64,000 nt of DNA from Chlorokybus atmophyticus. Taxonomy: Eukaryota > Plantae > Mesostigma and Chlorokybus algae. Below are positions 7,009-60,108 of this stretch, piece by piece. The position numbers and the translations under genes are program-made. The notes under the pieces were generated by a model that ran no database searches, had not been told where the DNA came from, and saw nothing but the letters and a program-made list of their open reading frames with translations. Where the stretch lies: positions 139,114 to 203,113 of the forward strand of contig RHPI01001965.1 of NCBI GenBank assembly GCA_009103225.1, read 5' to 3'. Numbering within the stretch: position 1 is the first letter of the stretch; every line of letters begins with the position of its first letter.

Positions 7009-7587
7009 CTAGTTGATGGTGACCTCAGTTGTCTTGGGCGGGTCCTCGCGGCGCTTCTGCACGGAGATGGTCAGGACGCCGTTCTCATGCTTGGCAGTGA
7101 TCTTGCTGGGGTCAGTGTTCTGAGGCAGGCGGAAGCTGCGCTCGAAGCGGCCGTAGCTCCTCTCCACTCTGTGCCAGTTGTCACCCTCTTTCTTCTCCTC
7201 CTGCACACATGCACACAGACAGCAATCAGCAACAATGCGACACATACACCTAGTTCATGTACAACAATCCCAGACCAAGTCTACCGCAAACAGCACCACT
7301 CATGCAGTTTGTAACAAGACAATCACAGCACTAACCTGTTTACGCTCGCCGCTGATGCTGAGCACTCTCCCATCCAGCACCTGCACCTTGATGTCCTCCT
7401 TGTTCATGCCAGGGACGTCCGCATGGAACTCAAAGGCGTCCTTCTTCTCCACCACGTCTACACTGGCGGTAGGCACACGAGCCACAGCGTTTGCAGCAGC
7501 GCCTCCTCTCAGGACGTCAAACAGACTGTCGAACTCCCGAGGCATACCAAGCTCCCACTCCCGACCAAAGAAAGGAGACAGCGCCAT
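7009..7587 (-). CDS. HSP20: Small heat-shock protein A (HSP20, 'MALSP' subtype), 2 exons
   Basis: [16 protein letters not shown]...[28 protein letters not shown] | intron 7201-7335 | [28 protein letters not shown]...[11 protein letters not shown]...EVTIN*; complete alpha-crystallin domain. Confidence 0.96.
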
Positions 7588-8276
7588 GCTTGCTACTGAT
7601 GCTCACACACAACAGCACTCACTGGCACAGACCAGTCTGCTCAAGTCTTGATGCACTAGACTGCAACTGCTACTTGTAAAAAGTTCCCCAAAACACACGC
7701 ACACGTGACAGCGCAATCAGATACCCCATGTGCAATTACCTCCCTGCTTATATCCCTGACAGTGCCGCCACAGTCGCCGCCCGGCTTCTTCTAGAGCAGT
7801 CTAACCGCGGTCGAGACTCTCAGACTGGAAGCTTCTGGTCCGTTCTGTTCAATCTGTTCGACGCTAACCGGAGCGCGAGAAAACCAACCGACTTGCGGGC
7901 CCAATGCTGCGGAATTGGCTGCCGACGAGACCAAATTGGAGTTTCTCACAAGGGTTGATGAAAGGCCATTGTAAATTTGCAAAAGGTTGGACAAACAGCA
8001 CTGTGGTTAGTTGACCCTGAACAGTGGCACAGGACAGAGCTTTCCACAGTGTTCTGTGCGCAGTGTGCTGCTCAGAGCCGCACTGCAGCCCACGTGGCAG
8101 AGCGTTTCAGACGGCAGCGGCGCCGGCAGAGCCCAGGAGATACAGGTGAAGCGCCTTGTCCTCAATTATGTGACAAGCTGCGCGTCTGTGTCGTAGCTGC
8201 TGTGAGGCATCAGAGCTTGCTGCTGTCAGCGTAGTGCTGCTGGTTGCTGCAGGTGCTGTTGCTGCAGAGTGAAGCT
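7588..8276. promoter_or_regulatory. Bidirectional sHSP promoter 1 (HSE, G-box, TATA)
   Basis: GAAgcTTC at 7828-7835; TATAAG on the minus strand near 7747-7752; GGTTAGTTG 8005-8013; CACGTG 8091-8096; collinear with the reverse complement of 23811-24530. Confidence 0.8.
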
Positions 8277-8845
8277 ATGGCGCTGTCTCTTTTCCCTGGC
8301 ATGTGGGAGCTTAGCATGCCCTCAAGCGACTTGGACCAGCTTGTCAACGCCTTGATGCGGCCTTCTCAGGAGGACGGAAGTCAGATCACCCGCATGCCAA
8401 CAGCCAGTGTGGATGTGGTGGAGACCAAGGACGCCTTCGTGTTCCATGCGGACGTGCCTGGCATGAAGAAGAAGGACATCAAGGTTCAGGTGCTGGACGG
8501 GCGCGAGCTAAGCATCAGCGGCGAGCGCAAGCAGGTAGATACCACAAGTGCTATGCCTGCAGTTGACTGCTATAATGTTTGCACACTGCATATTTTGTGC
8601 TTCTCAAGTTGCTGCCTATCCCACATGTGTTAGGCAGGTTGTTTGTTGAATACTTGTTCACTCACTGCCATGCGCAGGAGGAGAAAAATGAGGGTGACAA
8701 CTATCACAGAGTGGAGAGGAGCTATGGCCACATTGAACGTGCATTCAAGCTGCCTCAGAACACCGATCCCAGCAAGATCACCGCCAAGCATGAGAACGGC
8801 GTCCTGACCATCTCGGTGCAAAAGCGCAAGGAGGAGCCGCCCTAA
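8277..8845 (+). CDS. HSP20: Small heat-shock protein B ('MALSL' subtype), C-terminally truncated and probably decaying
   Basis: MALSLFPGMWELSMP...ISGERKQ | intron 8535-8677 | [28 protein letters not shown]...KRKEEPP*. TAA at 8843-8845 is followed in frame by T-N-A-I-N-I-E-TAG (8846-8869), the relic of the paralogues' KTTAINIE tail. Confidence 0.92.
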
Positions 8846-9748
8846 ACCAATGCCATCAACATAGAATAGGCACTGAGCTGATATCGTGGAGGACAGCATG
8901 CTACACACACTTGCAGTTTGAAGTTTGGAGTAGGGTGCATGTAGGGTAGATCCCATCATCATCGCGCAGCTGTAGCATAAAGTTAATACCTCGTTTGCCA
9001 CTTGACGTGCAGCTATTGTAAATATAACAAGATTTGTTGTCAACAAAGTGCTCAAGCGACTGTCAACACTGTGCTAGAAACATTGAGACGCTCTTGCATC
9101 TGTTTCAAATGTGCGACAAGTTGTTGTTGTTGCCTACCTGGCCTACGGCACGCTTGCAACTCCAAGTTTGTTTGCATTTGGCGCCCTACACCTTGATTAC
9201 CACAACCTGCACAAGCTACTCTTGTTGTTTACACGCTTGTTGGTTACACACACAGTGCAGCATGCTTCAATACACCCCAAGCAGCAAGTTACAGCAACAA
9301 CGTTGTGGCTGTCGCAGCTTGATTCAAATTTTCAACAATACTAAATTTTTGCAGTATCCGTTGCATGCCAGCTACTGGCTAAACACATGTCCATGGAGCG
9401 ATCGTTGTTACCTCTTCGCTGTGGTCGTGGACAGTATGAAACACGATGCACCACGCAGAAGTAGGCTTGCCACTGAACCCGATGGTTGCCAGATACGCAG
9501 TTGCAGCGCCCGCTTGCACCACATCCTGTGTTAACAACTCATCAACAGTCGGACTGGCGCAGTTTGACGCTGCACATGTTGATCAATGATCAGAATTAGT
9601 TGCCAAGTGCACACGGCTCAAACCAACAGATTCGTGTACGGGTCATCCATGCAGTCATGCGTACGCACACAACTACATGCGCGCAGGCGGACTCAAGGAT
9701 GTATGTCCGCACACGAACGCACAGATGTACGCACGTGCACACATACAG

Positions 9749-9750
<2 letters not shown>

Positions 9751-9800
<50 letters not shown>
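9751..9800. repeat. (AC)25 microsatellite
   Basis: Perfect dinucleotide run between sHSP B and sHSP C. Confidence 0.97.
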
Positions 9801-9805
<5 letters not shown>

Positions 9806-10009
9806 GACACTCAGGTACACGCACACGCACGCACTCTCACACTGTGCCCGCGTGTGCATTCATGCTGTTTGCCATGGCACCTCTTTCGACCTTCAAGCGT
9901 TCAAGAGATAAACAATGCCATTCACTCAGTCCTGAGTGATTAGGGCCACCTTTGTCCCTACATGCAGCAATGAGGGCCGCCAGATAAGCTGCACAGTGAC
10001 GCCGCGGCG

Positions 10010-10235
10010 TCACGTGACAGACACAAACCCAAACGGAAGTCACAAGCCAAACACGAAGCTTCCGCCGACCGTCGTTCGCGTTCTCCCGATTGTTCCATGG
10101 TAGCTTGTAAGATGGAAGTTCCACCCCACTGACGCGAAGCAAGGGACGCTTCCGGAACAGCCGTTTGCACCGGAAGCTTCCTTCCCGCACGTCGCTGGGC
10201 TCTAGAAGGGCGGCGGCAGTGTCGGTATAAGTATC
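10010..10235 (+). promoter_or_regulatory. HSE array, G-box and TATA upstream of sHSP C
   Basis: CACGTG 10011-10016; GAAgcTTC 10055-10062 and 10173-10180; TTCcgGAA 10150-10157; TATAAG near 10225. Confidence 0.8.
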
Positions 10236-10424
10236 TGTCTCCTGTACCACTGGAGCACCTCAGCTGTGGGCGAGCAAAGGAGTGTATAAGTGTTGAAAGG
10301 GTACTGCTTAGTGAGGAGTGCGCTGTGAGCAAGTCAGTCAGCAAGTGGCGGCTGCAGGCTTGCAGTAATTGTGTGTACGAGAGGCTTCTTCTCCCGTCGG
10401 TGTCACACCCACTGCAAGGTAGCT

Positions 10425-11125
10425 ATGGTCAACATGGCGCTTTGGGAGGTGGCGCTGCCGCTGGAAGACTTCCTGCTGGTGGACGAGAAGCCCAGGAAGA
10501 ACCATGTGCACACGCACAGGCACAAGGAGAAGACGCTGCATAGCGACCACGGCACACCCGCAATGATGGCAACCAGTGTGGACGTGGTGGAACGGCCTGA
10601 CGCCTTTGAGTTCCATGCAGGTACTTTAGGGTGCAAAGTGTGGCATGCACCTATTTTGTTGTTGAGCCACATGCATGGTGTGTATGCTGATGACAACTGG
10701 TTGGCAAGATAATTGCCTCTAGCTTGCAGTAGGCGCTCAAGCGCATGAACTGTTGTGCAGATGTACCCGGCGTTAGCAAAGAGGACCTCAGTGTTCAAGT
10801 CTTTGAAGGGCGAGTGCTCAGTATCAGTGGCAAACGCAAGAGGGTGAGTGTGCCTTACTCCGATACCATGCACACAGAGTGGCGGTTGTTTTGATCAACA
10901 CTAACAGTTGCTCACACGTATGTGCATTTGCAGGAAGCGAGGCAAGAGGGTGACAGGTTTCACAGAGCTGAGCGCAACTTCGGCGAGTTCGAGCGGAGGT
11001 TCAAGCTGCCAAAGCTGGTGGACGCCAGCAAAGTTAGCGCGAAGCATGACAATGGAGTTTTGACCGTGTCTGTGGCGAAGCACAAGGAAGTGACGCCCAA
11101 AGCAATCACTGTTGAAGTTCAGTGA
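10425..11125 (+). CDS. HSP20: Small heat-shock protein C ('WEVALPL' subtype), 3 exons
   Basis: MVNMALWEVALPLEDF...VDVVERPDAFEFHA | [28 protein letters not shown] | EARQEGDRFHRAERNFGEFERRFKLP...[11 protein letters not shown]...AITVEVQ*. Confidence 0.94.
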
Positions 11126-11694
11126 TGGGCCTTGTTTGCAGTCGGCAAGACTGATGTGCTCTACTGTTTTTGTACATAGCTTTGCCAGAACAAATTGAAA
11201 TGATACAAAGTCTCTCCTGGCTCTCTACAAAGTCCTTCTGTCTCAATAGTTGCCTGCATTCTGCTTGCGTAGCATTGCGTGTGCGTGCGTGCGTTGTTGG
11301 TGGGAAGTTCTGTATGTGGGTGTATGGGTGTATGTACTCACGCACGTACGTTTGAGTGTGCGTGTGTGCATGTTTAAAATTCCATACTGTGGTGGTGGGT
11401 GGGGGTGGGGGTGGGGGTGGCGGGGAGTGGGGGCCTTCTAGTGTGCGTGTGTGCACCTCTGTGCGTATGCCTGCGCGTCTGTCTGTGTGACTATTAGCGG
11501 GTGCGTGCGTGTGCAATTAGTATAATAGGTGTACTCCGTGTGTTGTATACGTGTTTGTCCCCCCGAACTCTGATCCGACATGTTGAACATGCTTTGTGCT
11601 GCTGTGTGAACATTTACCACGACCACGTGTACGGGCCAGATCACTGGCTTGTCATCCACAACTACCGTGACATATGCGCACAATCGGCGTATGA

Positions 11695-11783
11695 GCGCAT
11701 TGTTCAGTGCTGAGCAACTCGGAGTTGCTCAGCACTGAACAATGCGCCAACTTTGTTGTGGACGAGTCGTCCAAAACAAAGTT
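11695..11783. repeat. Two tandem inverted repeats: a perfect 26-bp-arm palindrome and a 17-bp-arm hairpin
   Basis: gcgcattgttcagtgctgagcaactc-g-gagttgctcagcactgaacaatgcgc (11695-11747, no mismatch), then aactttgttgtggacga-g-tcgtccaaaacaaagtt (11749-11783, one mismatch). Confidence 0.95.
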
Positions 11784-13393
11784 ACGAGCTCAGTACCGAT
11801 AACTTTATGAATACTCAAAGTAGTATGATGAGATGATCAAGGCACTCATAAGTGACTCGGAGTCCCGGCACCTATGAGTCATCATGCCAGACACTCACCA
11901 TACTTTAATGGTAAAACTAATCAGGTTGCTAATTCAAAATATTAGGTCATGACATTGAATAGTCAGTAGTCACTAACAAGTGGAAATCACGCGTGAGCAA
12001 GACTATATATGGTGATAGCATCGTTCATGTGGCTAGTTGCTTGGTGACGATTTGGGCTCACCCTGCTGAAGAGTAACATGCACCCACGCGCGCGCACGCA
12101 CACAAACGCGCACGCCCACACGCACACATGCGCGCGAGTGTGCACGCACACTGACCTGCATCCACGCACACGCGTGTGCCATGCACACGTGCGTACACGC
12201 AGGAAAATGGTTGATGCGCTGTTGTTACTTGCGACTTGGGCAAGGGGGTAAACGCCAGGGCTAGTGATACTGACAACAAGTATATTGATCAAGTACAGTC
12301 AGTCGGCAAATGTTACAAGGTAAGTCTAGCGTCCACGCCTGGCAAAGTGTAAGGTAGATTCATCAGCTGTGCCGCTGCTCCATTATATATGTGACCCTCA
12401 CCACATCTCCGCATGTGCACGTCGACCAAAGCTGGACCAACCAAGCAGTACTGTAGCCCAATACTGCATATTAATGCAGTATTGGAAACATGGTCTGTGC
12501 TGCGATCAAGTGGTACTCAGCAACCCTGCGATGTTCTGCCATGTTCATGTTACAGTGCTGACAGAAGTCTCGTTTCAGCACAACATGCAGGCAGCAAGCT
12601 GGCATACGATTGCAGCTATGCCGTAGCCGCCGCTTCCAGGTACATGCTGCCAGGTACATGCTGAACAAAAGCGAAGCAAAAGATAACAGTGCGTTGCCAC
12701 ACAGCACAAATCCCCATTCCTTCTGGTATACATAATCAATCATCCACACATGTCGCACTGCGCTATCTCCCCTCCGTGCCCATTCCCTGCCTTGTACCTA
12801 AGCCGCTCACACATGCGTGCGCACGGGTCGTGCATACAAGCATTAAATGCATGGACTGCGCCCTGTAATGATAAGTTGTTGAAGATGAAGCTGTACACAG
12901 CTTTCTACTATTCATCAGAATGGTTTTCTTGGGCCAGTTGGACGCGTCTGCGCAAAACAGGCAGTACTGCATTTCACCAAGCAGCAGTTCTTCTTATGTA
13001 CATAGGACCAAAGCTAGCTAGGCCGACTAAGCAAAGATTCCACGACAGAAGGAAAACCTACACCAGTCAGCACATTGCATACAAGGTGGAGGGGAACACA
13101 CTGTACACTCCCTTCTCCCGCCCTGCTCTGCCCCACGAGTCACCTGCGCCACCTGAAAGCATCAGCATGTCAGCCTGGTAAACTTGGCAGGCTGAAATGT
13201 TTGCAACGACCGCCAACAGCCGTCAAGAGAAGTTGGCTGTGTAATGCCACATGGTTCTATGTGGCATTTTTCGCTGACTAACAAGCAAGATGCAAGGACA
13301 ATCTTGCCAGTGGCGGAGTCACTGCGGCGCGTGTCAAGATCTTGACAACAAGTGTGAAGGTTAATGCTGGTGGTTACCTGTTGGGAGACTCAT

Positions 13394-14272
13394 CTAAGAG
13401 ATCTGGACATCCTGGGCCTGTCGCTGCTGCTCGCCTTCCTCCTTTTTGCCGACACTTACAACGAGCACACCATCCTGCAAGGCACGCAGTAAGCACCCCA
13501 ACACTCGAGTCATGCCACGCCTTCAACATACACAGCTGTTTGTAACCAGCTGTGTATCCACCCAAACCATCTCTACCTCAATCTTTGCAGACACTTTGCT
13601 GGGGTCAGCGTTTTGAGGCAGGCGGAAAGAGCGCTCAAACTGCCCCATGCCACGCTCCGAGCGCTGGACTGTGGCGTTCTCCTGAAGTTGTGGCTGTGGA
13701 AGTGCCAAGCAGTCACTTCAAATGAACTCCAGCAAAGACACACACGCATATGCTAAGCACGTGTGCATGCCAGGGCACTGACAGGCGAAAACCATGGCGC
13801 ACCGGCTGACGCTCGCCAGAGATGTTCAGCACACGGCCCTCCAGAACCTGCACCTTCATGTTCTCCTTCTTGACGCCGGGAACGTCTGCAAGCGCGAGCT
13901 CAGGTCGTTCAGATTGCATCAGAATGCCATGTGTGCATGCACCGATAGCCGTGCAGTCCTCAAGCAGGCAGGCATGCATGCATGCGTTGCCGGATATTGA
14001 TGGACGCAAAGCAGCGATACCACTCGCAAGCGCATGCACGCGCTCAAACACTCACCCATCAAGAATTCGTATCTGTCTGGGTACTCGATGATGTCGACGC
14101 CGGTAGCCATCCTGCGCTGTCCGCGCTCGCCCTGGGCGCCCTTGCCTTGGCCTCCGCCGCGCCTGCCCGCCCCGCGGGTGCCCCAGTCCAGGTCGATGTC
14201 GAAGGGGAAGCCGGCGAAGCTGAAGGGGTTGAAGAGGTCGTCGTCGAAGAAGCCCCGGAGTGCCAGCGCCAT
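13394..14272 (-). CDS. HSP20: Small heat-shock protein D (divergent, Gly-rich N-terminus), 4 exons
   Basis: MALALRGFFDDDLFNPF...VDIIEYPDRYEFLM | [28 protein letters not shown] | ...[27 protein letters not shown] | DGVLVVSVGKKEEGEQQRQAQDVQIS*. Confidence 0.92.
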
Positions 14273-15083
14273 GTTGTCGCGGTTGGCGCAAGGGGCACAC
14301 ATAAAGCCTTGCGGTGAGGTGCAATCCCGAGCTTTGAGTTGCACACACGACCAGCAGCGCACACAACCGAGCTGACCGCGCAAACACAAACAGCTTCGCA
14401 ATCCTACTATATGTGTAAGGCTTTGTTGGGTTTGTATGCCTCGCCTGCTCCATCCAGCACCGCACTCACCGTTGATGGGCACCTTTCAAAGAGCGCTGTG
14501 GTATCCACCTCAGGCTACTGCTGGTTTGCGACGACGACATGACTGACTCAGGCTCCGATGACGTCATGAAGACACCTGACCAAGAATATGTTCTGCCGAC
14601 ACATTTGTGCCAGAGGCCTCCTTCTTGTCAGGGCCGCAGTCGCCATCGTCAGCAAGGACAGCGCTAACGCTAGCGCTGACGCCGCGCAAGGCGATGCAGG
14701 CGCTGCAGCCGTGATGATGTCAACAGGAAGAGATCTTCGGTCTCCTCTCCCCCGCCGCCGGGCTGGCAGAGCAATTGCGGCGCTGGCCTGGCAGCAAACA
14801 CACTCTCATTGCCAATCAGTGCTCATGCATGATGCACAGCAGCGTGGCTGGCGCCAAACGTCAGACCTGGCTGACAGCTGCTGGCAACGAGAGAGTGTCG
14901 AAAGGTTTCTGGCTGCGAAACCTCTCCACATGCTGGAATGGGGGTAGTACAGTAGTAGTAGAGTTTGTTACTGTGTGCTGCTGCTTGGTCTAAAGCTGCT
15001 TTGGTCCACTGTGGCGCCCAGCTTGAAGTTCGGGGTGTGCGTCCGCGTTTGGATCTTGGCCTCCAGACCAGTTGCCAACGACC

Positions 15084-16022
15084 ATGGCACTGACCGCGTC
15101 CTCCTTGCTGCCTCGCCTCTTCGACGATGACGACCTGTTCGGCGGCCTGCTGGACGTTGGGGGCGACCGTCGCCGCCGCCGCCGCCGCACGGCGGACACC
15201 GACTGGATGCCCATGACCACCACGGGCGTCAACGACAGGACCCTCAGCAACCTGGACGTGGACGTGGACATCATAGAGAGGCCCGACCGCTTCGAGTTCC
15301 GCGTTGGTAAGACGCTTGTGCACACGTATGCATGCCACAGTGTGCATGTGTGCATGCGGGAAGGAAAGTCTACCAGAATCATTCGAGTGGTGGCTTCGCC
15401 CTCCGTGACAACTACTGTGCATGCATGCAGACCTGCCGCCCGGTACTGGAAGGGAGGACGTCCAAGTCCAAGTGTTGGACAATCGCCACCTGGCCATCAC
15501 TGGAGAGCGCCGAGAGGCAAGGCAGCCCTGCATGTGATGCCATAAGCGGACGCGTGTCAGCTGTGTGCATGTAGTGCTTAGCGCTTGGGGCCAGTCATTG
15601 GCTTGGCGCTGTATGCAACAGGAAAAGAGGCGAGACGAAGATCAGTACCAGCTGGTGGAGCGCCGCTACGGCCGCTTTGCTCGCGTCTTCCGCCTGCCTC
15701 GGAATGTGGACACCAGCAAGATTGACGCCAACCTTGACGTGCGGGACCGTGAGCAAGTGGCTTGGCAAATGCCAGTGGCACACTGCATGCAGTTTGGGTA
15801 GCATGCAATGTGCCACCGCTAGACATGTCTGTTTGCATCCGGCACCTCTGAACAGGATACCAACTTGCATTGTAGCCGACATGGTTTCCTATGAGCGAGA
15901 TGACCCTCCTTGTTGATCGTTGGCAGAACGGCCAGCTGGTGATTACTGTGCCCAAGACGGGGGATGCGCCTGCCGGAAACGTGCAGGACGTGAACATTGC
16001 CTGCCCCTGCCTTGAAACCTAA
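15084..16022 (+). CDS. HSP20: Small heat-shock protein E (divergent, poly-Arg N-terminus), 4 exons
   Basis: MALTASSLLPRLFDDDDLFGG...DRRRRRRRT...VDIIERPDRFEFRV | DLPPGTGREDVQVQVLDNRHLAITGERRE | (GC donor) EKRRDEDQYQLVERRYGRFARVFRLPRNVD...NLD | NGQLVITVPK...DVNIACPCLET*. Confidence 0.92.
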
Positions 16023-16533
16023 GGTACAAGTTCACACCTCAGCTGCATGCGGCCTGCCTCAGTCTTGTTGCATTGCTTGAGCAATAGCAATAAACTTCAT
16101 CAGCAACGGGTGACCTGTTGCTGATGAAGTGACATGCTCCTCCTGTGCACTGTGATTGTGACACGACTGACTCGCGCTCTCTTGCACCTGAGCCTGAGTG
16201 CAGAGGTATCCGGCTGCAGTCAGCGCCTCTCTTGCGGTGTTGGCTTCTAGAGTTGTGGGCTTGAGGAGACCACCTGCAACACTCCCTGGCGTGCAACACC
16301 TGCCAGTTGTACAGATGCGGGAACGCATGTAGCTTTGTAGTTACTGCTCTAGGGAAGAGTGCCACCACTTGCGCACAGTGGCGGTTTATAGCAGACGGAG
16401 GCATGTACAGAACTGGTGTGTTTGCACCTAGATTGCTTTGCAAAAGCGGTGTTGTACGCTGGAAGATTTTGTGTGAACAGCTGCTGCTCAGTCCAACAGA
16501 ATGTGGAATGCAATGGCATACCCAACCCCCCAA

Positions 16534-18549
16534 TCAGCACATTGATTTCTGTGCAATCGGCACTGCAATTGCACACTGCACAACATCATGGATGCTCGTG
16601 TTGGTCGTATCCACAGCCTGTGAGAGTGACAAACCATCCATTCCGCTTATGCATTCACTTCGCTGTCCAGATGTGAGTGCTTTGCCATTGGACCAAACCA
16701 AGGTTGACACAGTGCACTAACCTTGACTACTAAGTCTGGTCGGTCGTATTCTCTCTGCGTGTAACAGACTCAGAGGCTGTAGTACTGTACTACCACAGTA
16801 TCATGCAACGATGCGCATGCATGCAATCTACCGGTACGCTCAATGTGCCACTCACAGCTCGCCCCCTCAGGTGCGGACACCGCCCTGGCAGCGTGAATTG
16901 CGATGCGGGTGGGATAGAGCAGCGGCCGCGGCGGGTTGCGCGGGCGCGCATGCGCTGCTCAGCAGGCTGCGTGTGCGAGGGTCACCCTCAACGCTAACAC
17001 GGAGTTAGTGGTGTGTCAGTGCCGCATCAACGTGTGTCGTGGACGCTGCGTGCGTGCGCATACATGCCGCCAGTGGTGGGCATGACATGCGTAGCAGAAC
17101 AGTGAAGGCATCCGCATGGGATACTTGTGCTACTGTACACATAGTGTACAGAGTATGCACGTGATGTATGCAACATGCACGACACATGCATAGACACTTA
17201 AACCACAACCACACTCACCTCTATCACGACCACCGGGCTAGGTGCACACTACCTACTACTTCACTACTCTACTGCCCGACGTGTGCGACTCACCTTCATT
17301 TGCTGCACAACGCGCTGCACTGCCAGAAGAAACACAAGGTCAACACCGCGCCTACCTTCCGTACGCACGATGACGCTCAGAAAGAGTCTACGCTTACACG
17401 CACGCATGACTCACTGTAAGCGTGGGCTCCGAGCACGCGCATAAACAAATGCGCACGCACATGCACGCATATCATGATGCACGCACTCGCTGAATGTGCC
17501 ACACTCACTGGTCATGATGTGTGTGCTGATCACTACATGGTGCAGAACGCGTGCCTGCCTGTTGTACACTTGCATGTGCTGATCACAGATCCCTTACACG
17601 CGCACATACACATGCAGCCATGCACTCAGAAACGTGCATACACATGATGACACACATGTGTGTACACGCGCACTCTTGCGCGCACATATATTCATGCATT
17701 TGCAGAAGCACAGACACATGCGTAGACGTATTCGCACGCACGCATGCACAACATCACATACACAGCCATACACACATTGTGCGCATATGCACACGTACAA
17801 ACCATGATATTCATATTCCACTCATGCTGACCGCGTGCGGTGCTGCCTTTACCCCTGCATGTGCTGGCAGGGATCCCACACATATGCACACGCGTACCAG
17901 ACCGGGATGTGGTCATTGTCATGCTGGACACCGACTTCCTTTTATTGCAGGAGACGACGAGCCGTCATCACACGACAGCAAAAGCGCCACATGGTCCCAC
18001 GCAAATTGAGCGAGACGATTGTTGAAACAAGCATAGGAAGCTGCACCTGCATAACTATCCACCACCAAATGCAAATGCTTGCGCACAAACAGCCCAGAAC
18101 ACAAGAACGGCTTACAGAACAACCCTTTGTGGGTTTGACATTGATTGGCAGCATTGGCAACAGGTGAATACATCAACCGCGGACACTGTAAACAGCGATG
18201 TAACCATTGCGACGCACCAACCAAAACGTCACGCACCATGCAACCGGACGTAACTCAATCAGCTGTTGCAGCCTTCACTTCCAGTGCAACTGCAGCAAGA
18301 TACAACAGCCATGCTTCAGCTTTCAGCTTCAGCTTTGTACACTTCAACATTGCACACGCTCTGCGCAGCAGAACCGTCTGCACATCAAGTGAAAGCCCAG
18401 TCAGATTGTCACATTGTCCCATAACATGCCACGTTGGGAGTCTCAGCTCGCATATACTCACGCCATGTCGCCACCGCCGCCGCCGCTACTGCAGGATGCT
18501 CACCTTGCATGAATGATGACTTGCAGGCTGCAAGCCGAGCAGCCATCAT
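16534..18549 (-). CDS. Putative micro-exon gene of unknown function (structure unresolved)
   Basis: Repeated minus-strand GTGAG/GTAGG donors and pyrimidine-CAG acceptors (16.85, 17.22, 17.29, 17.35, 17.41, 18.46 kb) frame short open segments (LFLSVIVRTE, QRVVQQMK, PVVVIE, terminal AVDTTNTSIHDVVQCAIAVPIAQKSMC*). Candidate start MMAARLAACKSS. I could not assemble a single confident frame. Confidence 0.35.
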
Positions 18550-18771
18550 GGCTGCAGGCACTGCCAGCGACGCGCGCTGCAGCCTCGCGGAAGCAAGCCA
18601 CGCCCGGGCAGACGCACATACATATAGAGCTGCTTGTGTTGCTTCAGGGCAGCTCAGCTGTGCAGTGCTTCGGTGGCTTCGTGTTGGCGGTGGCGGCGGC
18701 GGCGGGAGTGGCGAGATGAGCTTGCTGGCTTGAAGGCGGACAACCGTCTGATCCCTGATCAAGACTGAGAC

Positions 18772-19958
18772 ATGGCGCAGGGACGGTCACTGGGCCCCTC
18801 CACTTCCGGAGAGTGCAGCAGGTAGGTGCAGTACTGCTGTACGCTCGTACATGCACAGCCTCCACTGCTTGGCTGTGCCTATCTGACATGCCAGTGTCGC
18901 CAAGCAGCCGACAAGGCGCTGCCGGATTCTGTTATTGCTGCTCGGACTGTGCATGCTCTTGCTTATAACATGCACGTAAGCGCATGCACAGCGAGCTGCC
19001 TAAAAGACAAGTTACTTTGCCTTTGCATAACGATCATAGTGGGGGCTTGAGCATATGCCAGGATACGCTATTGATTGTTGTCGCGTATAGCATGTTGCAA
19101 CTGTCCAACTTGTTTCTAAGCGTTGTATGTACGTTGCAGTTCGGCATATAAGGTCACATAGCTGCTGTCTTGCAGATATGCGCAACTTATAATACTACTG
19201 GGAGTTACTATCAAAGGCGAGCTGGGCTTCCTTTGCATTTGCTGGTTGATTGCGTGCTGGCGTTGAGTAGCTTGTATGTTTGCAAGCTAAGTGTTGTCAT
19301 CGCTAGTGCCGAGCTGGTGCATGCCATCGATGGCTACATTTTTGAGGCTGCGCGCACGAAAGCAAGAGCTTTACGTGATGATGGCGAGAATCATGGCCCG
19401 CAGAAGCAGCAGCGCCCCTCGTATCGTTTCCACTATGACTCTCCCGGCACCTTAGAAGCTGCGCCATTACCGACCCTAAGGCGCGATGACAAGCTGAGAG
19501 CATACTGTGTGAGACTTTCTATACCATGACTGTTTGCTTGTAGGTGTGGATGGTGTTCAAGCTGCTTGAATATCGCTTTGGTTGTAACTGATTTTTGTCT
19601 CTGTTCGCAGAGCATGTTGTACGACATTTGCCAGTATGAAAAGCAGCGCAGTTCAGAAGACAAGCAGCAGCAGCAGCAGCAGCCTGACCACTCACAGCAC
19701 CAGCATGGCGGACCAATGCAGTGCCACTTCGACCGCACTTGTCCCTTTTTCTCAGACAAAGCCACAACTGTGGTGAGTTGTTGTCTCAGTAAGCATAATA
19801 TCTTGATGATGCCTGACCATGCCGACTCTGAGTCAGAACGTTGTGACAACATTGCTCTGTATTGGTTGTTGACCCTGCCCACTCTTCAATCTTTCTATAC
19901 AGGAGCGAACTTTTATGCGACAGGTGTTGAAGCATATGTCATGCAAGTCTGCAAGTGA
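18772..19958 (+). CDS. Type II membrane protein of unknown function, multi-exon
   Basis: MAQGRSLGPSTSGECS | SVAKQPTRRCRILLLLLGLCMLLLITC (signal anchor; splice phases compatible), then exons ICATYNTTGSYYQ, AELVHAIDGYIFEAA..., SMLYDICQYEK...CHFDRTCPFF, SFYTGANFYATGVEAYVMQVCK*. Confidence 0.6.
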
Positions 19959-21302
19959 CATGCCAGACAACTTGATAGCTTTTGCGGGACGGAGAGCTGG
20001 GGACCGGTGACATGCACGCGGTCACAGTGCACTGCGTGGCACGCTTGCAACTGCAGACAATAGGTCAGAAGTGCACTGCTACTGACTTGTTTGGGTGCAT
20101 GTCGTCAACCAGTTGATGCTTAGGAACTGCATTCATGCAGGGTGCATTTACGACAGTAGAAGTGTTGCGCTAGTGGTGGTATCCGGAAATTTGGTGATGT
20201 GGCTGCTATGACTGCTATGACTTCGGTTGTGGTGCGTGTGAGAAATGGCCAGAAGAAAGGAGATACTTCAAGGAACTGGCAGCCATGGAGAAACCGCGTC
20301 TACGCTGCTGGCGATGCAGCCTGGTGTGCTGGCGGCGCGTAAGCAATGTGGTCACTGGCTTGATGACGTGAACTTTGTCAGTCATTGTCGGCAGTTGTGC
20401 GATCTAAAAATGTTGTGTGTATGTCAAATGTTGCGTAACTGTCGTCCTTTTACTTATAGCAATCATGGTCTTTGGAGCTCGTGGGATTGTTGGTGTAGAC
20501 TAAATAATGGGTAACCTAAGCTGACTTCAACCACGTATGCAAGCAGTACCAAGCACCATGTCGCCGCATTCCGATGAAAGCGCCACTGCGAGAATACGCA
20601 CGTGTACAACCATTCAAGTAGTCTGCACTTCGTTGGACGCATTGCTTCAAAACTACAGCACAAGGACTGCCCTGCATGCGGTTCACACTAGCATGACATA
20701 TACCACGGTTAGGCTGAGCGAGGGAATGTGGCGAGCGTGTGCAGCGGCAACAGCGAGGTACCGCAGGAGATGCTGAGGACAAAGGCAAATACGTTGTGAG
20801 CTGTGAGAGCTGTGATACGACGTGTGCTGTGGGAGATGTGCCTCAGAGGTGTGACAGTCAGCGGCAAATGCTGACCACATCCATGTACATTTTTATAGAT
20901 CCAGTGCTTCCATAACCATTTCGTGGGGTGATGCTCTGTTTGCTTGAACAAAAAGCGGTTGTATAATACAATGCAGCTTTGGGTTGGCATGCATTGGCAC
21001 AGATTTTGAAGTGCAACGAGGACACTCTGAGAGCACATGTGGGTGGCGCCACAAGGACACAGATGGCACATGCACTTAAAATGCGCGTGGCATATGCCCG
21101 GTAGGGTCAGTCTCAACACTTGGCAGATGACACAAGTTCACTGAACAAGTAGCAGACAAACTGACAGTCATGGCACATGAGGTCTTGAACAACATATGTT
21201 GGCACAGCAGCATATCCCTTTTGTATACTGTCTTAAAGAAGCGAGCTATTTACAAGAGTAGTACATAGCGACCATCGGCCAGAATCCCAGAAACTACGTC
21301 TA

Positions 21303-21980
21303 TCACTGAACTTCAACTGTGATCGTCTTGGGCGTCTCTTCCTTGCGCTTCGCCACGGACACCATCAGCACGCCGCCGTCGTGCTTGGCGCTGGCTATGC
21401 TGGCATCAACCGTTTTCGGCAGCTTGAACGTCCTCTCGAATGTTCCGAACTTGCGCTCCAGTCTGTGCCACTTGTCATCTTCCTGGACCGCACCCTGTAG
21501 ATGCAAGCACAGTTGGTGAGCACTCCGCAAGTTCAAAAAACAGTGAGAGTTAGGAACGCTTTTACAAGACACTCACCCTTTTGCGCTCGCCGCTGATGCT
21601 GAGGACTCCGCCTTCAAGAACCTGGACTGCGAGGTCCTCTTTGAGAAAGCCAGGTACATCTGCAGGCCAACATTCGTTAAGCACTCGCTCTGTCACAGCG
21701 TGTATGCTACATTTCTGTCAGGCAACCACCGGTGCGGCACAGCCACACACACACACGGTGAGCGTTTTCAATCACCTGCATGGAACTCAAAGGCGTCTTG
21801 GCGCTCCACCACGTCCACATTAACAACCATCGTGTTGGTGGCCGTTGCGACCTTGGCGTCTTGATCTTGTTGTTGATGCCTCAATCTGTGCTGTGACGAA
21901 GCCTTGCTGCAGCCCTTCTCCCCCGCCAGCGCTGCACCGTCCAGAGGCAGCGCCACCTCCCACACAGCCATGCACACCAT
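21303..21980 (-). CDS. HSP20: Small heat-shock protein F ('WEVALPL' subtype, paralogue of C), 3 exons
   Basis: MVCMAVWEVALPLDG...VDVVERQDAFEFHA | [28 protein letters not shown] | ...DKWHRLERKFGTFERTFKLP...KTITVEVQ*. Confidence 0.94.
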
Positions 21981-22129
21981 GCTGTTTAACAGACTGAGTG
22001 CAGCGTCTCTGGCTCACACCGAGGTCACGCACACTGTCCTGCCAACACTTAGGCCTACTAGCGCTTAATCTTGCCCCTGCGCCTACGCCGCCTCGACTGC
22101 CACTGTGTCATCAGCAGGAGAGCCATGTG

Positions 22130-22350
22130 GGTATGTATATACCACGCCACCGCAGGGCGGAAGCTCCGAAAGGGGACGCGCTGGAAGCTTCCGTTATAGC
22201 ACGAGTTGCGCGAACGCTCTGGAAGCTCCACTCTATTGGGCGCACGTGACGTCGCGTCACTGGAAGCTTCGCGCTCGGGTTCTTGACGTTCCAAGTCGGA
22301 AGTTCGTCACTGCCGGAAAACAGCGAAAGGAAGTTTCCTGGTCACGTGAG
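22130..22350 (-). promoter_or_regulatory. Dense HSE array, G-boxes and TATA upstream of sHSP F
   Basis: GAAgcTTC 22184-22191 and 22263-22270; GAAcgCTCtgGAAgcTCC 22212-22229; CACGTG 22243-22248 and 22343-22348; TATATA on the minus strand near 22135-22140. Confidence 0.82.
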
Positions 22351-23168
22351 CGATGCGCTAAGACTCGACAGTGTAAACTTGACGGATGGGGTGTCGTGGG
22401 TATCTGTACTTCTAACACAAGGTCGGGTAGAAGTTTAAGCTAACGTGAGGGTTTTCTTTGCGTTTGGTGCATAGCTGTCGTCCCATGCGAGGGATCGATT
22501 TACATCCAACGGGAAGTGTCGTCTGTGTTTGGTGCTTAGCTGGTGTTACATGCTCAGCACAAGCAGAGTGAGCTGCGGCGGTGTCGCCAGCGCGATCGGC
22601 GGGGGGGAGGGACTTTTTGCTGTACATGTCTGCTGCAGTTGGACACGCTGTTGGTATGCATTGTGACTAGCTCTGTACTCAATGGCAACTTGCCGGAACG
22701 CTCTCTCTTTCGCAGTAGTGCCCAACAGCCAGTGCAGTAAGAATTACGTGCAAGAGTAACCAAGCACAAATGGTTTGTCATAACGAGACAGCTTGAGACA
22801 GCATCTTGCACGTTAGTATCTGCTGTGAAAGACCACCATGCCCGAAGGCATAGCAGCAAGCTCCGCCAGTACGCGTAGGTGACATGTTACATTATGTGCG
22901 TGCAGCTAGGCACCTAGTTCTAGAGCGCTTGCGACAGTTCCATGCAAGTACGAACTCATCATCATACAGTGTAAACAGTACACGTCAACGCAAAACCAAC
23001 TTTTGCATTACAGAGGGGTAAGGTAACACCATACTCCAGTGTGTATGGCACCAGGGTACAGAGTCTTGGCAAATAAGCTATTGGCCGAGGATCATCTAAC
23101 CTAGATGGGTGAAAAAGTGTGTCCACAAGACAACTATGGCTGCTACTGTACACGCCACGCAACACTGC

Positions 23169-23810
23169 CTACTCGATGTTGATGGCGGTTGTCTTGGGCT
23201 CCTCCTGGCGCTTCTGCACAGTGATGGTCAGGACGCCGTTCTCGTGCTTGGCAGTGACCTTGCTGGGATCGGTGTTCTCAGGCAGCTTGAATGCACGCTC
23301 AAAGCTGCCATAGCTGCGCTCCACTCTGTGATAGTTGTCGCCCTCCTTCTTCTCCTCCTGCACATCAAGCAGGAAGACACACACTGTCAACAACAAACTG
23401 TCCAACCAACCAAAGGTGGGGAAGATGACCTGCATATCACAAAGGCATTGAACTGCAACCAAAATGTGTTGACGGCGCAGTCCCACAGAACATGCATACT
23501 TAAAAACAGTGCAACACTCGACATGTGCAACCACCAGAACTGCAAAACATACCTGCTTGCGTTCACCGCTGATGCTGAGCACTCTTCCTTCCAGCACCTG
23601 CACCTTGATGTCTTCCTTCTTCATGCCAGGGACGTCCGCATGGAACTCGAAGGCGTCCTTCGTCTCCACAACGTCCACACTGGCGGTGGGCATGCGGGCG
23701 AGCTGCTGGCCGGCTGCTTCGCTGGAGGGCCGCAGCATGGCGCTGAAGAGGCGGTCGACGTCGCTGGTGGGCATGCCAAGCTCCCACATGGGAAACAGGG
23801 ATAGCGCCAT
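23169..23810 (-). CDS. HSP20: Small heat-shock protein G ('MALSL' subtype), 2 exons
   Basis: [17 protein letters not shown]...ISGERKQ | intron 23358-23552 | [28 protein letters not shown]...[11 protein letters not shown]. Confidence 0.96.
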   Translation of the reverse strand: MALSLFPMWELGMPTSDVDRLFSAMLRPSSEAAGQQLARMPTASVDVVETKDAFEFHADVPGMKKEDIKVQVLEGRVLSISGERKQVCFAVLVVAHVECCTVFKYACSVGLRRQHILVAVQCLCDMQVIFPTFGWLDSLLLTVCVFLLDVQEEKKEGDNYHRVERSYGSFERAFKLPENTDPSKVTAKHENGVLTITVQKRQEEPKTTAINIE

Positions 23811-24530
23811 GGTAGGAAACTGAAGCACTCGCCTCGCCAAGTAACTTGCTAGTACGGCAGCACTACACTTGCAGCAGCAAACTTCACACTCGCCAACCAA
23901 GGTTCAGCGCCTCACAGCGATTGGTGCACACACACTCGACCACACCGGCTCTGCATATGGACCACAATATATATACCCTGGGCTCTGCCGCCGCCGCCCA
24001 GAATGCTCCGCCACGTGGGCTGCGGTGCAGCTGCTGCTCTGAGCAGCAGCACTGCGCACTGAACTGAGGAAGCCTCGCGTGCCACTGTTTTGCGGTCAAC
24101 TAACCAGAGTCCAGTTCGATCCAACTTTCTGGAACGTCGCCATGCCCTTTCATCAACACTTGCAGAATTCCCAGATTCAACTTTGGCAGGCCAAATTGGA
24201 CGCATTTGGCCCCGAGTTCAGTCGTAACAACGTTTGTTTCGAGCTCCGGTTAACTCCGAACCGTGAAGCGACCAGAAGCTTCCAGTCTGAGACTCTAGAC
24301 TGCGGTTGGACTGCTCCAGAACTTCTAGACAAGAAGGCGGGCGGCGGTGTCGGTGAGGATATAAGAAGGGAGGTAACTGCACAGCCGACAGCGGAGTGTG
24401 CCGAGACACTGTTGGTTGCGACTGGTTGCAAATCTCAGGCGACAAGCAGTGCTTGCATTGTTGTGCGTCAACCAGGCCTGTGGACTGGTCTCTACGAGTG
24501 AGTGCTGTCGTGTGTGAAGCAGCAGTAAGC
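23811..24530. promoter_or_regulatory. Bidirectional sHSP promoter 2
   Basis: TATATATA on the minus strand near 23968-23975; CACGTG 24012-24017; CAACTAACC 24097-24105; GAAgcTTC inside 24270-24292 (23-mer identical to the reverse complement of 7818-7840); GATATAAG 24358-24365. Confidence 0.82.
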
Positions 24531-25092
24531 ATGGCGCTGTCTCCTTTCTTGGCCCGGGAGTTGGATCTTGCTATGCCGCGGGACTTCGACAGCCTGATGG
24601 ACGCTGTTCTGCGCGGAGGCGCCGCTGCCAATGCTATGACGCGCATGCCCACTACCTCAGTGGATGTGGTGGAGAAGAAGGACGCCTTTGAGTTCCATGC
24701 AGACGTCCCCGGCATGAAGAAGGAGGACATCAAGGTGCAGGTGCTGGACGGGAGGGTGCTCAGCATCAGCGGCGAGCGCAAGCAGGTTGGTGTTGCACCT
24801 GTCTTGTCACACTGAAGCTGTGCGGGTGTGCATTGTACTGAGTTTGTCTGGGATTGATATACACTGGCAGTGACTCACTGTTGCTTGTGGCTATGTGCAG
24901 GAGGAAAAGAAAGAGGGTGACAACTTCCATAGAGTGGAGCGGAACTATGGCCGCTTTGAGCGTAGCTTCCGCCTGCCTCAGAATACCGATCCCAGCAAGA
25001 TCACCGCCAAGCATGAGAACGGGGTCCTGACCATCTCTGTGCAGAAGCGCCATGAGGATCCGCCCAAGACAACGGATGTCACCATCAACTGA
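24531..25092 (+). CDS. HSP20: Small heat-shock protein H ('MALSP' subtype), 2 exons
   Basis: MALSPFLARELDLAMP...ISGERKQ | intron 24786-24900 | [28 protein letters not shown]...EDPPKTTDVTIN*. Confidence 0.96.
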
Positions 25093-53068: not shown

Positions 53069-53706
53069 TTAGTGAATGGCAATGTCCGTTGTCTTGGGCG
53101 GTTCCTCCTGGTGCTTCTGCACAGAGACGGTCAGGACGCCGTTCTCGTGCTTGGCGGTGACCTTGCTGGGATCGGTGTTCTGAGGCAGCTTGAATGCGCG
53201 CTCAAAGCGGCCATAGTTCCTCTCCATTCTGTGCCAGTTGTCACCCTCCTTCTTCTCCTCCTGCAGGGGAAAGCACATAGCTTTCAGCACACATTGCGGC
53301 AGCCAGCAGAACGTAGTAGTAGAGACTCATCTGCATGCACACTCAACGACATCCGTGTCAACTTGACACGTTGACCACCTGTGTAAGAAGCACACATGCG
53401 TTCACGCACACGCACACACACATATCTACGACCTCCAACTTCTCGTCATACCTTCTTGCGCTCTCCGCTGATGCTGAGCACTCTCCCCTCCAGCACCTGC
53501 ACTTTGATGTCCTCCTTGTTCATGCCAGGGACGTCCGCACGGAACTCAAAGGCGTCCTTCTTCTCCACCACGTCTACACTGGCGGTAGGCAGGCGTGCCA
53601 CGGCGTTGGAGGCGGCGCCTCCGCGCAGAACGGCGTCCATGAGGCCTTCCATGTCCCGGGGCATGCCAAGCTCCCACTCCCGACCAAAGAAAGGTGACAA
53701 CGCCAT
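53069..53706 (-). CDS. HSP20: Small heat-shock protein I ('MALSP' subtype), 2 exons
   Basis: [21 protein letters not shown]...FEFRADVPG...ISGERKK | [28 protein letters not shown]...[12 protein letters not shown]. Confidence 0.96.
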
Positions 53707-54371
53707 GCTCGCTTAGCAGCAACGACTCGCACCAGTGCAAGAAATGCAACCGCAGACAGGCTTCCGTGCACCAAACTTGCAGCGGCGCTAAGGGCACACG
53801 TGAGCACACGAGATACTACGTCGACTCCACCCCAGAGCACTCCCCTGATTATATGTTCGCCGCCGCCGCCGCCGCTTCCAGAGCCATGTCTGTGTCAGTC
53901 TGTCTTTGTGCAGTGCAGTCCAGACCCGAAGCTTCCGGTCAGTTCCTGACCTCAGTGAGACTAACCGCGCGGAACGCAGAACCTTCACGATCCGGGACAC
54001 CCTCGACGGGTTCAAAGCAGTGTCTTAACGGTGTTACAACTTTGACCGCGGTCCCGAAAACTCCAGACGGAGTCCGTCGCAGTCATGAAACTGCAGCTCC
54101 GGTGGGGGAAGCTTAACGGCGCCTTGGTTAGTTGGCAACGAATAGAGAGAGAGAGCGCGGGAGCCTTCCACAGCATTCTGCCTAAGCCTTCCCACGTGAG
54201 CCAGACCTCTCTGGACGGCGGCGGCGGTGGCACAGTCCAGGGTATAAGTATAGCCAACCTGTGCAGCGGGGGTGGTAGGCAGATACCAGTGTTCGTAGCG
54301 CTCTCGGCGACTTGTGCGCGTGTGCAGCCTGCTCTAATTAGCTGTCAAGCGGCCTCTCAGCAATCATATCC
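53707..54371. promoter_or_regulatory. Bidirectional sHSP promoter 3
   Basis: TATAAT on the minus strand near 53848-53853; GAAgcTTC near 53928-53935; GGTTAGTTG 54126-54134; CACGTG 54193-54198; TATAAG near 54243. Confidence 0.78.
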
Positions 54372-55009
54372 ATGGCGCTGTCTCTGTTCGCCCCAAGCAT
54401 GTGGGAGCTCGGCATGCCCACCAGCGACTTGGACCAGCTCCTCAGCGCCGTGCTGCGCCCTGCGCAGGAGAGCGGCAGCCAGGTCGCGCGCATGCCTACC
54501 ACCTCCGTGGACGTGGTGGAGAAGAAGGACGCCTTCGAGTTCCGTGCGGATGTGCCTGGCATGAAGAAGGAAGACATCAAGGTGCAGGTGCTGGAGGGGA
54601 GAGTGCTCAGCATCAGCGGAGAGCGCAAGATGGTATGTTGATGGAGTTGCATGCAGTCTATGTGTGCGTGCACGTGTGTATGCCATACACATCCGGGATG
54701 TGCGGGGATGCATGTGGGCGCGTGTGTTTCTTGTGTTGGCTATTAGTTACTGTGCATGCGTCTCTACTGCTTGCTGGCTGAATCAATGCGTGCTGAGACG
54801 TCTGCCTTCCACTGCAGGAGGAGAAGAAGGAGGGCGACAACTGGCACAGAGTGGAGCGCAGCTACGGCCGCTTCGAGCGTGCATTCAAGCTGCCGCAGAA
54901 CACCGATCCCAGCAAGATTACCGCCAAGCATGAGAACGGCGTCCTGACCATCTCTGTGCAGAAGCGCCAGGAGGAGCCGCCCAAGACAACTGCCATCAAC
55001 ATCGAGTAG
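54372..55009 (+). CDS. HSP20: Small heat-shock protein J ('MALSL' subtype), 2 exons
   Basis: [23 protein letters not shown]...FEFRADVPG...ISGERKM | [28 protein letters not shown]...[12 protein letters not shown]. Confidence 0.96.
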
Positions 55010-58700: not shown

Positions 58701-60108
58701 NNNNNNNNNNNNNNNNNNNNNNGGGGGTGGGGGGGAAGAGGAGGGAGGGCGGGAGGGAGGCGGTGGGGCTGTAGATGGTGTTGTTGTAGTTATTGCTGTT
58801 GAAACTGCAGATGGAACATGATTGAGCGTGAGCGCCTAGCAATGTGCGTGCGTGCACGTGCATGCTTGCGTTTGAGCAAGTGTGCTCTACTGCTGCAACG
58901 CACTTGTTGTGGTTCGCTTGCTGGCCTTGGTGTCTGCTGTTGTCGTTGCTGGTGAGCGTGCAATGCGCTCGTCACCACCATTTCCATCATTCTGCTGTTC
59001 TGTATCAACAACCTGCTACGCGTGTGTAAGTCGAGTTGAGCAGATTGAGTGGGGCGTTTGATTGACAATGGTACCAGAAAGGCACCTATTCATAAACCAA
59101 CCCGCTGAGCTTTTGCATTGAGCAACTTGCATGCACAGGACACCCACCTTCTGATTGTCAATCTGCTCGTCCTCTTGTCCCTCAACAGCCTCATGCACCT
59201 CTTCTTCTTCGTCCTCATCCTCCTCACCAGCCTCGTCAGCCTCTTGCTCAATCTCATTCTCTTCATCCTCCACCTCGACATCCTCAACATCAGTAGCACC
59301 CTCCTCATCCTCATCCTCATCCTCATCATCCTCGTCCTCGTCATCGTCGTCGTCATCATCACCACCCCGCCCCTCCTCCTCATCGACCTCCTCAGTGTCA
59401 CCGCCCTCGTCCTCGTCCTCCCCATCCTCAACGTCCTCAACAGCGGCATCCTCCATCCGCCCGGCGTCCTCCTCCCCATCAGCGTCATTGTCAACGGTGG
59501 CGGCAGCATCAACAACACCCCCCTTCTCATCCACTCGCTGTGTGTGTTCTCCTGCGCCCTGCATCAGCGAGCGCTCCGCCATGCGCACTGCGAGAGAGCC
59601 AAAGAGCACTGTTGATGTTTGTTGACATCGGACACAGTAATGAGATGCATGCACAGAGTGAGTCGGCCTGTAACCCTGCCACGAACGTATCCTCACCTTG
59701 TTCCACGTTGGACTGGGCTGTGACAGCAGCGCCCACGCCGCCATCGCGCCTAGCTTTTGCCGTGTACCCGACCCACAGCACCTGGACGAAGAGCCACAAG
59801 TGACATGGGTTCAACATGTATGTTGAGGGGCACTCCTGTGGGTCTGGTTCAATGCCAGTATGAGAGTGCAAAGCTGTTTCTACGGGCGGCTAAGACCACA
59901 ATCAGTGTGCAGACAAGCACGTCGTCCTCTTGCCATGGCATCACGGCATGCACATGCTTACACAGATGAGGAGCAGAGAGACGGCCACGGTGATGAGAGC
60001 TCCCCGCCTGCCACGCGTCCTGACTCCTGTCGCTAATCCTCCTGCGCCCGCCCGGCCGCCGCCGCCGCCGCCAAACAGCGGCCGCCTCTCCGTCATCCCA
60101 GACAGCAT
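55740..60108 (-). CDS. CGR2/CGR3-like Golgi type II SAM methyltransferase (putative pectin methyltransferase) with acidic and Pro-rich stem and coiled-coil tail; spans an assembly gap
   Basis: MLSGMTERR...GALITVAVSLLLIC|VLWVGYTA (signal anchor); D/E tract; SPPPP stem; CAVVPMVMEVY...MLYVGEEAC...VHGIDP...CESL...SFGLVIASNLLENVPP...VLRELARVS...QSRSWWMEQFAMAGLEQ...IFLL. These motifs are collinear with plant CGR2/3 as I remember them. Confidence 0.78.
58215..58722. other. Assembly gap (N run) flanked by G-rich sequence encoding a poly-Pro stem
   Basis: About 500 N with GGGGAGGGG-type flanks on both sides. Confidence 0.97.

Follow-up and report, generated by a model that had tools for sequence, protein, structure and literature searches.

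Background

Mirror-image arrangements of small heat shock protein (sHSP) genes are best known from Caenorhabditis elegans, where, in the accounts of Russnak and Candido (1985) given by later papers, the hsp16-1/hsp16-48 pair of the hsp-16 locus has been duplicated as a 3.8-kb inverted repeat; the arms are described there as 100% identical and approx. 0.4 kb apart, an identity attributed to gene conversion (PMC3966223, PMC1803023). In Chlamydomonas reinhardtii, HSP22A/B and HSP22E/F form head-to-head pairs in which each gene has its own heat shock element (HSE) and TATA box, and HSP22E and HSP22F are 93% identical, including promoter and intron, which indicates a recent duplication (PMC5700999). 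Palindromes of sex chromosomes, as summarized in PMC1803023 from Rozen et al. (2003), have near-identical arms that evolve in concert by arm-to-arm conversion. Here we describe an array of eight sHSP genes in mirror order in a stretch of 64,000 nt (hereafter the window) of scaffold Chrsp64 of the alga Chlorokybus atmophyticus, which contains ten sHSP genes in all.

The Chlorokybus array resembles hsp-16 in that a head-to-head sHSP pair with a shared promoter region is present in a second, inverted copy, but the worm locus is a four-gene palindrome, whereas each Chlorokybus arm holds a third gene, the two arms enclose another pair and are separated by more than 10 kb, and their alignable parts are 11-30% divergent and show no conversion. 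Like the HSP22 genes, the array includes divergent algal sHSP pairs from local duplication in an ongoing lineage-specific expansion; the paper on HSP22, however, describes no higher-order mirror array (PMC5700999). As in sex-chromosome palindromes, inverted arms with gene copies flank a unique spacer, but the Chlorokybus arms appear to evolve independently. A prediction previously made for this DNA from its letters alone (the original prediction) suggested that such an architecture was new for algal sHSPs; given the palindromic locus of C. elegans (PMC3966223, PMC1803023) and the head-to-head pairs of Chlamydomonas (PMC5700999), this was too strong. Among the titles and abstracts listed by literature searches on Chlorokybus and sHSPs, none treated this locus.

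Results and Discussion

Eight sHSP genes form a nested mirror array

Exons were translated from their coordinates and used in translated searches to locate the sHSP genes, and ten HSP20/alpha-crystallin genes (designated A to J) were modeled in the window (Table 1). Eight of these form an array with the order A<- B-> C-> D<- E-> F<- G<- H->, and order, strands and subtypes were as the original prediction had given them. Three N-terminal types were recognized among the outer genes and the additional pair I/J, i.e., one in A, H and I, a second in B, G and J and a third in C and F, both of which have two introns. Intron positions are nested across the family, with one position present in all ten genes, a second in C, F, D and E, and a third in D and E only. 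Matches to Pfam PF00011 (HSP20) with E values from 1e-7 to 1e-27 were found on exons of A, C, D, E and G, those in D and E falling on exon 3, and the alpha-crystallin domain (ACD) could be aligned across all ten genes. The C-terminal I/V-x-I/V anchoring motif is present in nine of the ten proteins, whose sizes (141-173 amino acids) lie within the 12-43 kDa of the family.

Phylogenetic analysis grouped A with H (support 96/95) and C with F (100/100) as sisters, in agreement with the predicted pairing. B and G share their N-terminal type and a B+G group is not rejected (P = 0.31; approximately unbiased test), but the tree does not separate the two from J. D and E are sisters at 87/83, a value to be read with a long-branch caveat. 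All ten Chlorokybus genes form one clade (88/76), apart from the sHSPs of Mesostigma and land plants; land-plant sequences form a separate clade (92/82), and Mesostigma lies outside both. While the best database matches were named class I, ACD identity to these was only 50-55%, and membership of land-plant class I was rejected, as the ten genes sit in their own clade. On the evidence of the tree, the sHSP set is a local expansion of the Chlorokybus lineage, apart from the land-plant classes.

At the DNA level, self-comparison aligned positions 7011-8537 with the reverse complement of 25090-23550 at 72.5% identity over 1609 columns. In a global alignment of the A/B and G/H units, identity was 82-89% in exons, 68% in the intergenic region and 57-63% in introns, and fell to 39-49% (random level) in the flanks. 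C and F could be aligned in their exons only, and the longest exact match between the arms was 35 nt. Comparisons against shuffled sequences gave background values for the B-C versus G-F spacers (z = 2.6) and for the introns of arm partners (z = 0-4.5), and nothing above shuffled controls for the 3' flanks, the outer flanks and the C-D versus E-F spacers; alignable DNA stops at the stop codons of A/H and B/G. Overall, approx. half of each arm is alignable. The original prediction that 7009-11125 is the reverse-complement counterpart of 21303-25092 was thus correct for gene order, but applies to only about half of the bases. The same prediction treated D and E merely as a different pair within the spacer; however, D(-)/E(+) obey the same mirror rule as the outer genes, so that all eight genes form a nested mirror of which D/E is the innermost and oldest pair. 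The center of D/E (approx. 14.7 kb) is offset by 1.4 kb from the axis of the outer arms (approx. 16.1 kb).

The divergent promoters are conserved in inverted orientation only

The strongest similarity outside the exons was found in the regions between the head-to-head genes. The A/B intergenic region, when compared to the reverse complement of the G/H intergenic region, gave a score of 273 as compared to 21 ± 2 for shuffled sequences (z approx. 107), while comparison in direct orientation remained at background (z = 1.8), and the reverse-diagonal similarity expected from the original prediction is thus present. In the alignment, 13 exact blocks (10-23 nt) occur in collinear order with unalignable DNA between them, which is a footprint pattern. 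The four blocks that had been named previously are present and collinear, and so is the previously noted match of 7818-7840 to the reverse complement of 24270-24292; this 23-nt match (7818-7840/24292-24270) holds a GAAnnTTC heat-shock-element core. TATA-like blocks are located approx. 160 nt upstream of A, H and G, and a CACGTG core is found at approx. 8092 in the A/B promoter.

HSE-like sites were also found in the promoters of C (10144-10158) and F (22211-22225). Overall, four of the nine matches in the window lie in sHSP promoters, which make up 6.4% of the window; the strict HSE consensus is not enriched across the window as a whole, and only its placement in sHSP promoters is. The promoter shared by D and E contains no HSE-like site at 8/9 or better. 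The HSE-like and TATA elements suggest that the array genes would be heat inducible.

Divergence of the partner pairs and origin of the array

The divergence of the partner pairs increases monotonically toward the center of the array, from A-H (Ks, the number of synonymous substitutions per synonymous site, 0.50; four-fold difference 0.28; protein identity 89%) and B-G (0.51, 0.36 and 82%, respectively) to C-F (0.97, 0.39 and 63%) and D-E (1.52, 0.67 and 41%). Codon bias is weaker in C and F (effective number of codons, ENC, 47.5 versus 34-40), and in D and E it is the same as in the A and B types; an explanation of the Ks gradient by codon bias alone was thus rejected for D/E, but not for C/F. 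D-E is clearly older than the other pairs.

We consider it probable, though by no means certain, that the array, a cluster of cytosolic-type sHSP genes, arose when a three-gene block underwent inverted segmental duplication in the distant past, within a Chlorokybus-specific sHSP expansion. The ancestral block would have consisted of a head-to-head A-type/B-type pair with a shared divergent promoter of approx. 0.7 kb and a C-type gene downstream. A single copying event, either directly in inverted orientation or in tandem with a later inversion, would have placed F, G and H beyond the older head-to-head pair D/E. The two arms would have evolved independently since then, with neutral DNA (introns, untranslated regions and spacers) diverging past alignment and purifying selection retaining exons and promoter elements (TATA-like blocks, GAAnnTTC cores and the CACGTG box). 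The outcome would be additional copies of stress-inducible chaperones that diversify mainly in their N-terminal arms, B appearing to decay.

We infer this single-block event, and the selection that followed it, from several lines of evidence taken together, i.e., the mirrored order and strands, the sister relationships of A+H and C+F, the promoter homology found only in inverted orientation, the similar four-fold divergence of the three arm pairs (0.28, 0.36 and 0.39), the single clade formed by the ten genes, the uninterrupted assembly of the array (no N in 1-58214), the separate RNA contigs for A, H, C and B, and the enrichment of HSE-like sites in sHSP promoters. Moreover, duplication of a block accounts for eight of the ten genes with two duplication events, as compared to three if the genes were copied unlinked.

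Some observations weigh against this interpretation. The B-C and G-F spacers lack similarity, so contiguity of the block is not directly demonstrable; the pair I/J shows that a head-to-head pair can be copied alone; and B+G is not distinguished from J. In addition, we estimate that, given a clustered family, a mirror order of three-gene arms would arise by chance in about 1 of 8 cases. C-F also exceeded A-H plus B-G in the Nei-Gojobori proportion of synonymous differences (pS; bootstrap P = 0.006). At four-fold sites, on the other hand, C-F did not differ significantly from the outer pairs, and as codon bias is also weaker in C/F, duplication of a single three-gene block is not rejected.

The I/J and C-F results lead to an alternative that we regard as unlikely, albeit one deserving consideration, in which C and F are an older pair, the A/B unit was copied twice at a later time, from stop codon to stop codon (giving G/H and I/J), and G/H came to mirror A/B beside F by chance. 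I/J proves that copying of a pair alone has occurred, alignable DNA ends at the A/H and B/G stop codons, and C-F has about double the Ks of A-H and B-G; the HSP22E/F duplication of Chlamydomonas likewise begins upstream of the HSE and ends shortly after the stop codon (PMC5700999). However, introns within the unit are also unalignable, and the lost similarity of the flanks is therefore uninformative on the original boundaries. Moreover, the C-F four-fold difference (0.39) is compatible with that of B-G (0.36), and this history requires one extra event as well as a coincidence of position and orientation.

The monotonic gradient, seen in protein identity, Ks and four-fold differences alike, would also be expected if the palindrome had grown stepwise outward, a history that we find rather doubtful. 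D/E would have come first, as an inverted pair, followed by copying of C to F and finally of A/B to G/H, through fold-back or template switching at existing inverted paralogues. The mirror rule is obeyed at all four levels, including D(-)/E(+), and since D/E equal the A and B types in codon bias, this bias does not explain the higher Ks of the pair. Rearrangements can be driven by inverted repeats that are divergent and spaced apart (PMC10164571), and a model of inverted amplification is available (PMC4689423). Nevertheless, the gradient is made up of only four points, C-F and B-G do not differ at four-fold sites, the D/E center lies 1.4 kb off the outer-arm axis, no junction signatures survive, and a complex event is needed at each step. 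If true, this history would provide a natural evolutionary record of the palindromic amplification known from yeast and tumor cells.

Homogenization among gene copies

The original prediction further proposed that the arms may homogenize each other's copies. An active palindrome kept alike by ongoing arm-to-arm gene conversion could explain inverted arms that carry the same gene types and exons that are more alike than the surrounding DNA, and it has a precedent in the identical (100%) arms of C. elegans hsp-16 (PMC1803023). Here, partners differ at 28-39% of four-fold sites, with Ks of 0.5-1.0, and the arms lack the near identity of a conversion-maintained palindrome, reaching 72.5% over the alignable 1.6 kb. 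A run test for arm-to-arm tracts detected none for A-H (P = 0.25) or B-G (P = 0.42), and the longest identity of 35 nt and the distance of more than 10 kb between the arms likewise argue against exchange. Together with the comparisons below, this makes ongoing conversion between the arms very improbable.

Sites that distinguish the A from the B type are confined to the first 150 coding nucleotides, and N-terminal Ks between the two types exceeds 1. In the alpha-crystallin part, Ks was 0.27-0.49 for any two of the six A- and B-type genes, regardless of type or arm, so that Ks in the ACD region is no lower for arm partners than for non-partners. Pooled four-fold differences were similar within types (0.27-0.29) and between types (0.30), and the arm partners A-H (0.28) and B-G (0.36) were no closer than the head-to-head neighbors A-B (0.32) and G-H (0.37). 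The simplest reading of these sequences is that the crystallin halves of the ancestral head-to-head pair were homogenized before copying and that the copies would then have diverged independently. As a separate observation, the A and B types show mosaic evolution, with strongly different N-terminal arms and crystallin halves that are equidistant among all six genes (Ks 0.3-0.5).

Signals of exchange involve only I with J or the B type, and not the arms. Exon 2 of I contains a B-type tract (coding alignment columns 309-335; P = 0.0005, run test), and the I and J introns (53261-53451 and 54633-54817) resemble each other at their ends (z = 11), which hints at gene conversion inside this small head-to-head pair. 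Where concerted evolution is visible, it thus appears to operate inside the small head-to-head pairs rather than from one large arm to the other; the array, as far as its sequence can tell, is not a palindrome that homogenizes its arms, and the arms seem to have drifted apart long ago.

The third pair, I/J, is no more diverged from the other two in its coding sequences (Ks 0.35-0.45 versus A/B and G/H) than those two pairs are from each other. Its promoter contains none (0/13) of the blocks that A/B and G/H have in common. The I/J promoter also appeared self-complementary (z = 8.8), but this signal was traced to a GGC simple repeat and rejected as a candidate feature.

Transcripts, assembly and annotation

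RNA support was obtained from short Logan contigs of public runs, for which growth conditions are unknown, placed on the first arm. A contig of 753 nt crosses both C splice joints with zero differences, a contig joint that skips 7201-7335 supports the A intron, and a low-depth spliced contig (8030-8145/8253-8312) covers B and supports its 5' untranslated region (UTR) intron. Contigs carrying H's own 3' flank show that A and H transcripts are distinct. A, B, C and H are thus transcribed.

The sole assembly gap of the window (508 N at 58215-58722) lies far outside the array, and as there is no N anywhere in positions 1-58214, the orientation of the arms is independent of scaffolding. A misoriented or chimeric contig as the source of an apparent mirror can accordingly be dismissed as highly improbable, since, even though read support consists of short Logan contigs only, an assembler would not confuse arms that are 11-30% divergent and A and H transcripts each have their own 3' flank; in the annotated protein P0001, G and F are joined on one strand, but this model derives from the same assembly and adds no independent support.

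The stop-free read-through of G served as query in a word search for annotated proteins. Four of the models are identical to annotated proteins (A = P0003, C = P0006, I = P0004 and J = P0002), and the 120 matches listed for this G-based search did not include B, D, E or H. P0001 (307 amino acids, 21303-23810) is G fused to F; it splices the last codon of G to the start codon of F, changing the last residue of G from E to D at the junction, and predicts a two-domain sHSP. This looks like a gene-fusion artefact of annotation. The G intron (23358-23552, 195 nt) is open in frame with both exons, and a transcript retaining it would give a protein of 213 amino acids with a 65-residue insert within the crystallin domain.

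Gene models conform to canonical GT-AG introns, with the exception of E intron 2, where in-frame splicing is possible only from a GC donor at 15517. Long open reading frames in the spacers gave no domain match in a Pfam search, an Rfam search of 5-27 kb found no family, and a (CA)n microsatellite is present at 9738-9842 in the B-C spacer.

Table 1. Positions of the sHSP genes and their divergent promoters in the window
Feature	Coordinates	Strand	Description
A	7009..7587	-	sHSP, 147 aa; exons 7587..7336, 7200..7009; intron 135 nt
A/B divergent promoter	7588..8276		13 blocks conserved with the G/H promoter, inverted
B	8277..8869	+	sHSP, 141 aa; exons 8277..8534, 8678..8845; 5'UTR intron 8146-8252
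C	10425..11125	+	sHSP, 156 aa; exons 10425..10620, 10761..10843, 10934..11125
D	13394..14272	-	divergent sHSP, 161 aa; four exons; exon 3 acceptor ambiguous (13681 or 13693)
E	15084..16022	+	divergent sHSP, 173 aa; four exons; head-to-head with D
F	21303..21980	-	sHSP, 159 aa; three exons; mirror partner of C
G	23169..23810	-	sHSP, 148 aa; exons 23810..23553, 23357..23169; mirror partner of B
G/H divergent promoter	23811..24530		inverted homologue of 7588-8276; 8/9 HSE-like site 24121-24135
H	24531..25092	+	sHSP, 148 aa; exons 24531..24785, 24901..25092; mirror partner of A
I/J pair	53069..55009		direct orientation relative to A/B; no C-type neighbor
I	53069-53706	-	A type, 148 aa; member of third head-to-head pair
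J	54372-55009	+	B type, 150 aa; member of third head-to-head pair

Gene B

Gene B contains a premature stop codon at 8843-8845, eight codons ahead of the ancestral stop (8867-8869), which deletes the C-terminal I-x-I motif, and the former tail is still readable downstream. The TATA run and the 8/9 HSE-like site of G are degenerate at the homologous B positions (8137-8152 and 7975-7990); B uses an upstream start with the 5'UTR intron 8146-8252, and its only perfectly matching RNA contig is of low depth. With moderate confidence, we consider B to be a decaying copy, i.e., a pseudogene in the making, the stop codon being known from this assembly alone. Another run labeled as the same species (X4) yielded a high-depth contig with 92.5% identity to B exon 1 (8260-8485), closer than G or J (82%); this contig may represent either a paralogue not seen here or the orthologue of a cryptic sister species.

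Conclusions

Chlamydomonas is a chlorophyte, and Chlorokybus is an early-branching streptophyte at the base of the lineage leading to land plants. The array multiplies the chaperone gene set, as had been predicted, and multiplication of chaperones at this position in the streptophyte tree bears on the evolution of plant heat tolerance. The cluster is a tidy example of ordinary gene-family growth, in which the sHSP expansion of Chlorokybus appears to have proceeded locally, through head-to-head pairs and inverted copying, and the same pattern is seen in nematodes and in Chlamydomonas. At least one reference model, the G-F fusion protein P0001, needs correction. Finally, the diverged arms would provide a built-in phylogenetic footprint of a bidirectional promoter, and the 13 conserved blocks are candidate heat-shock regulatory elements for an early streptophyte.

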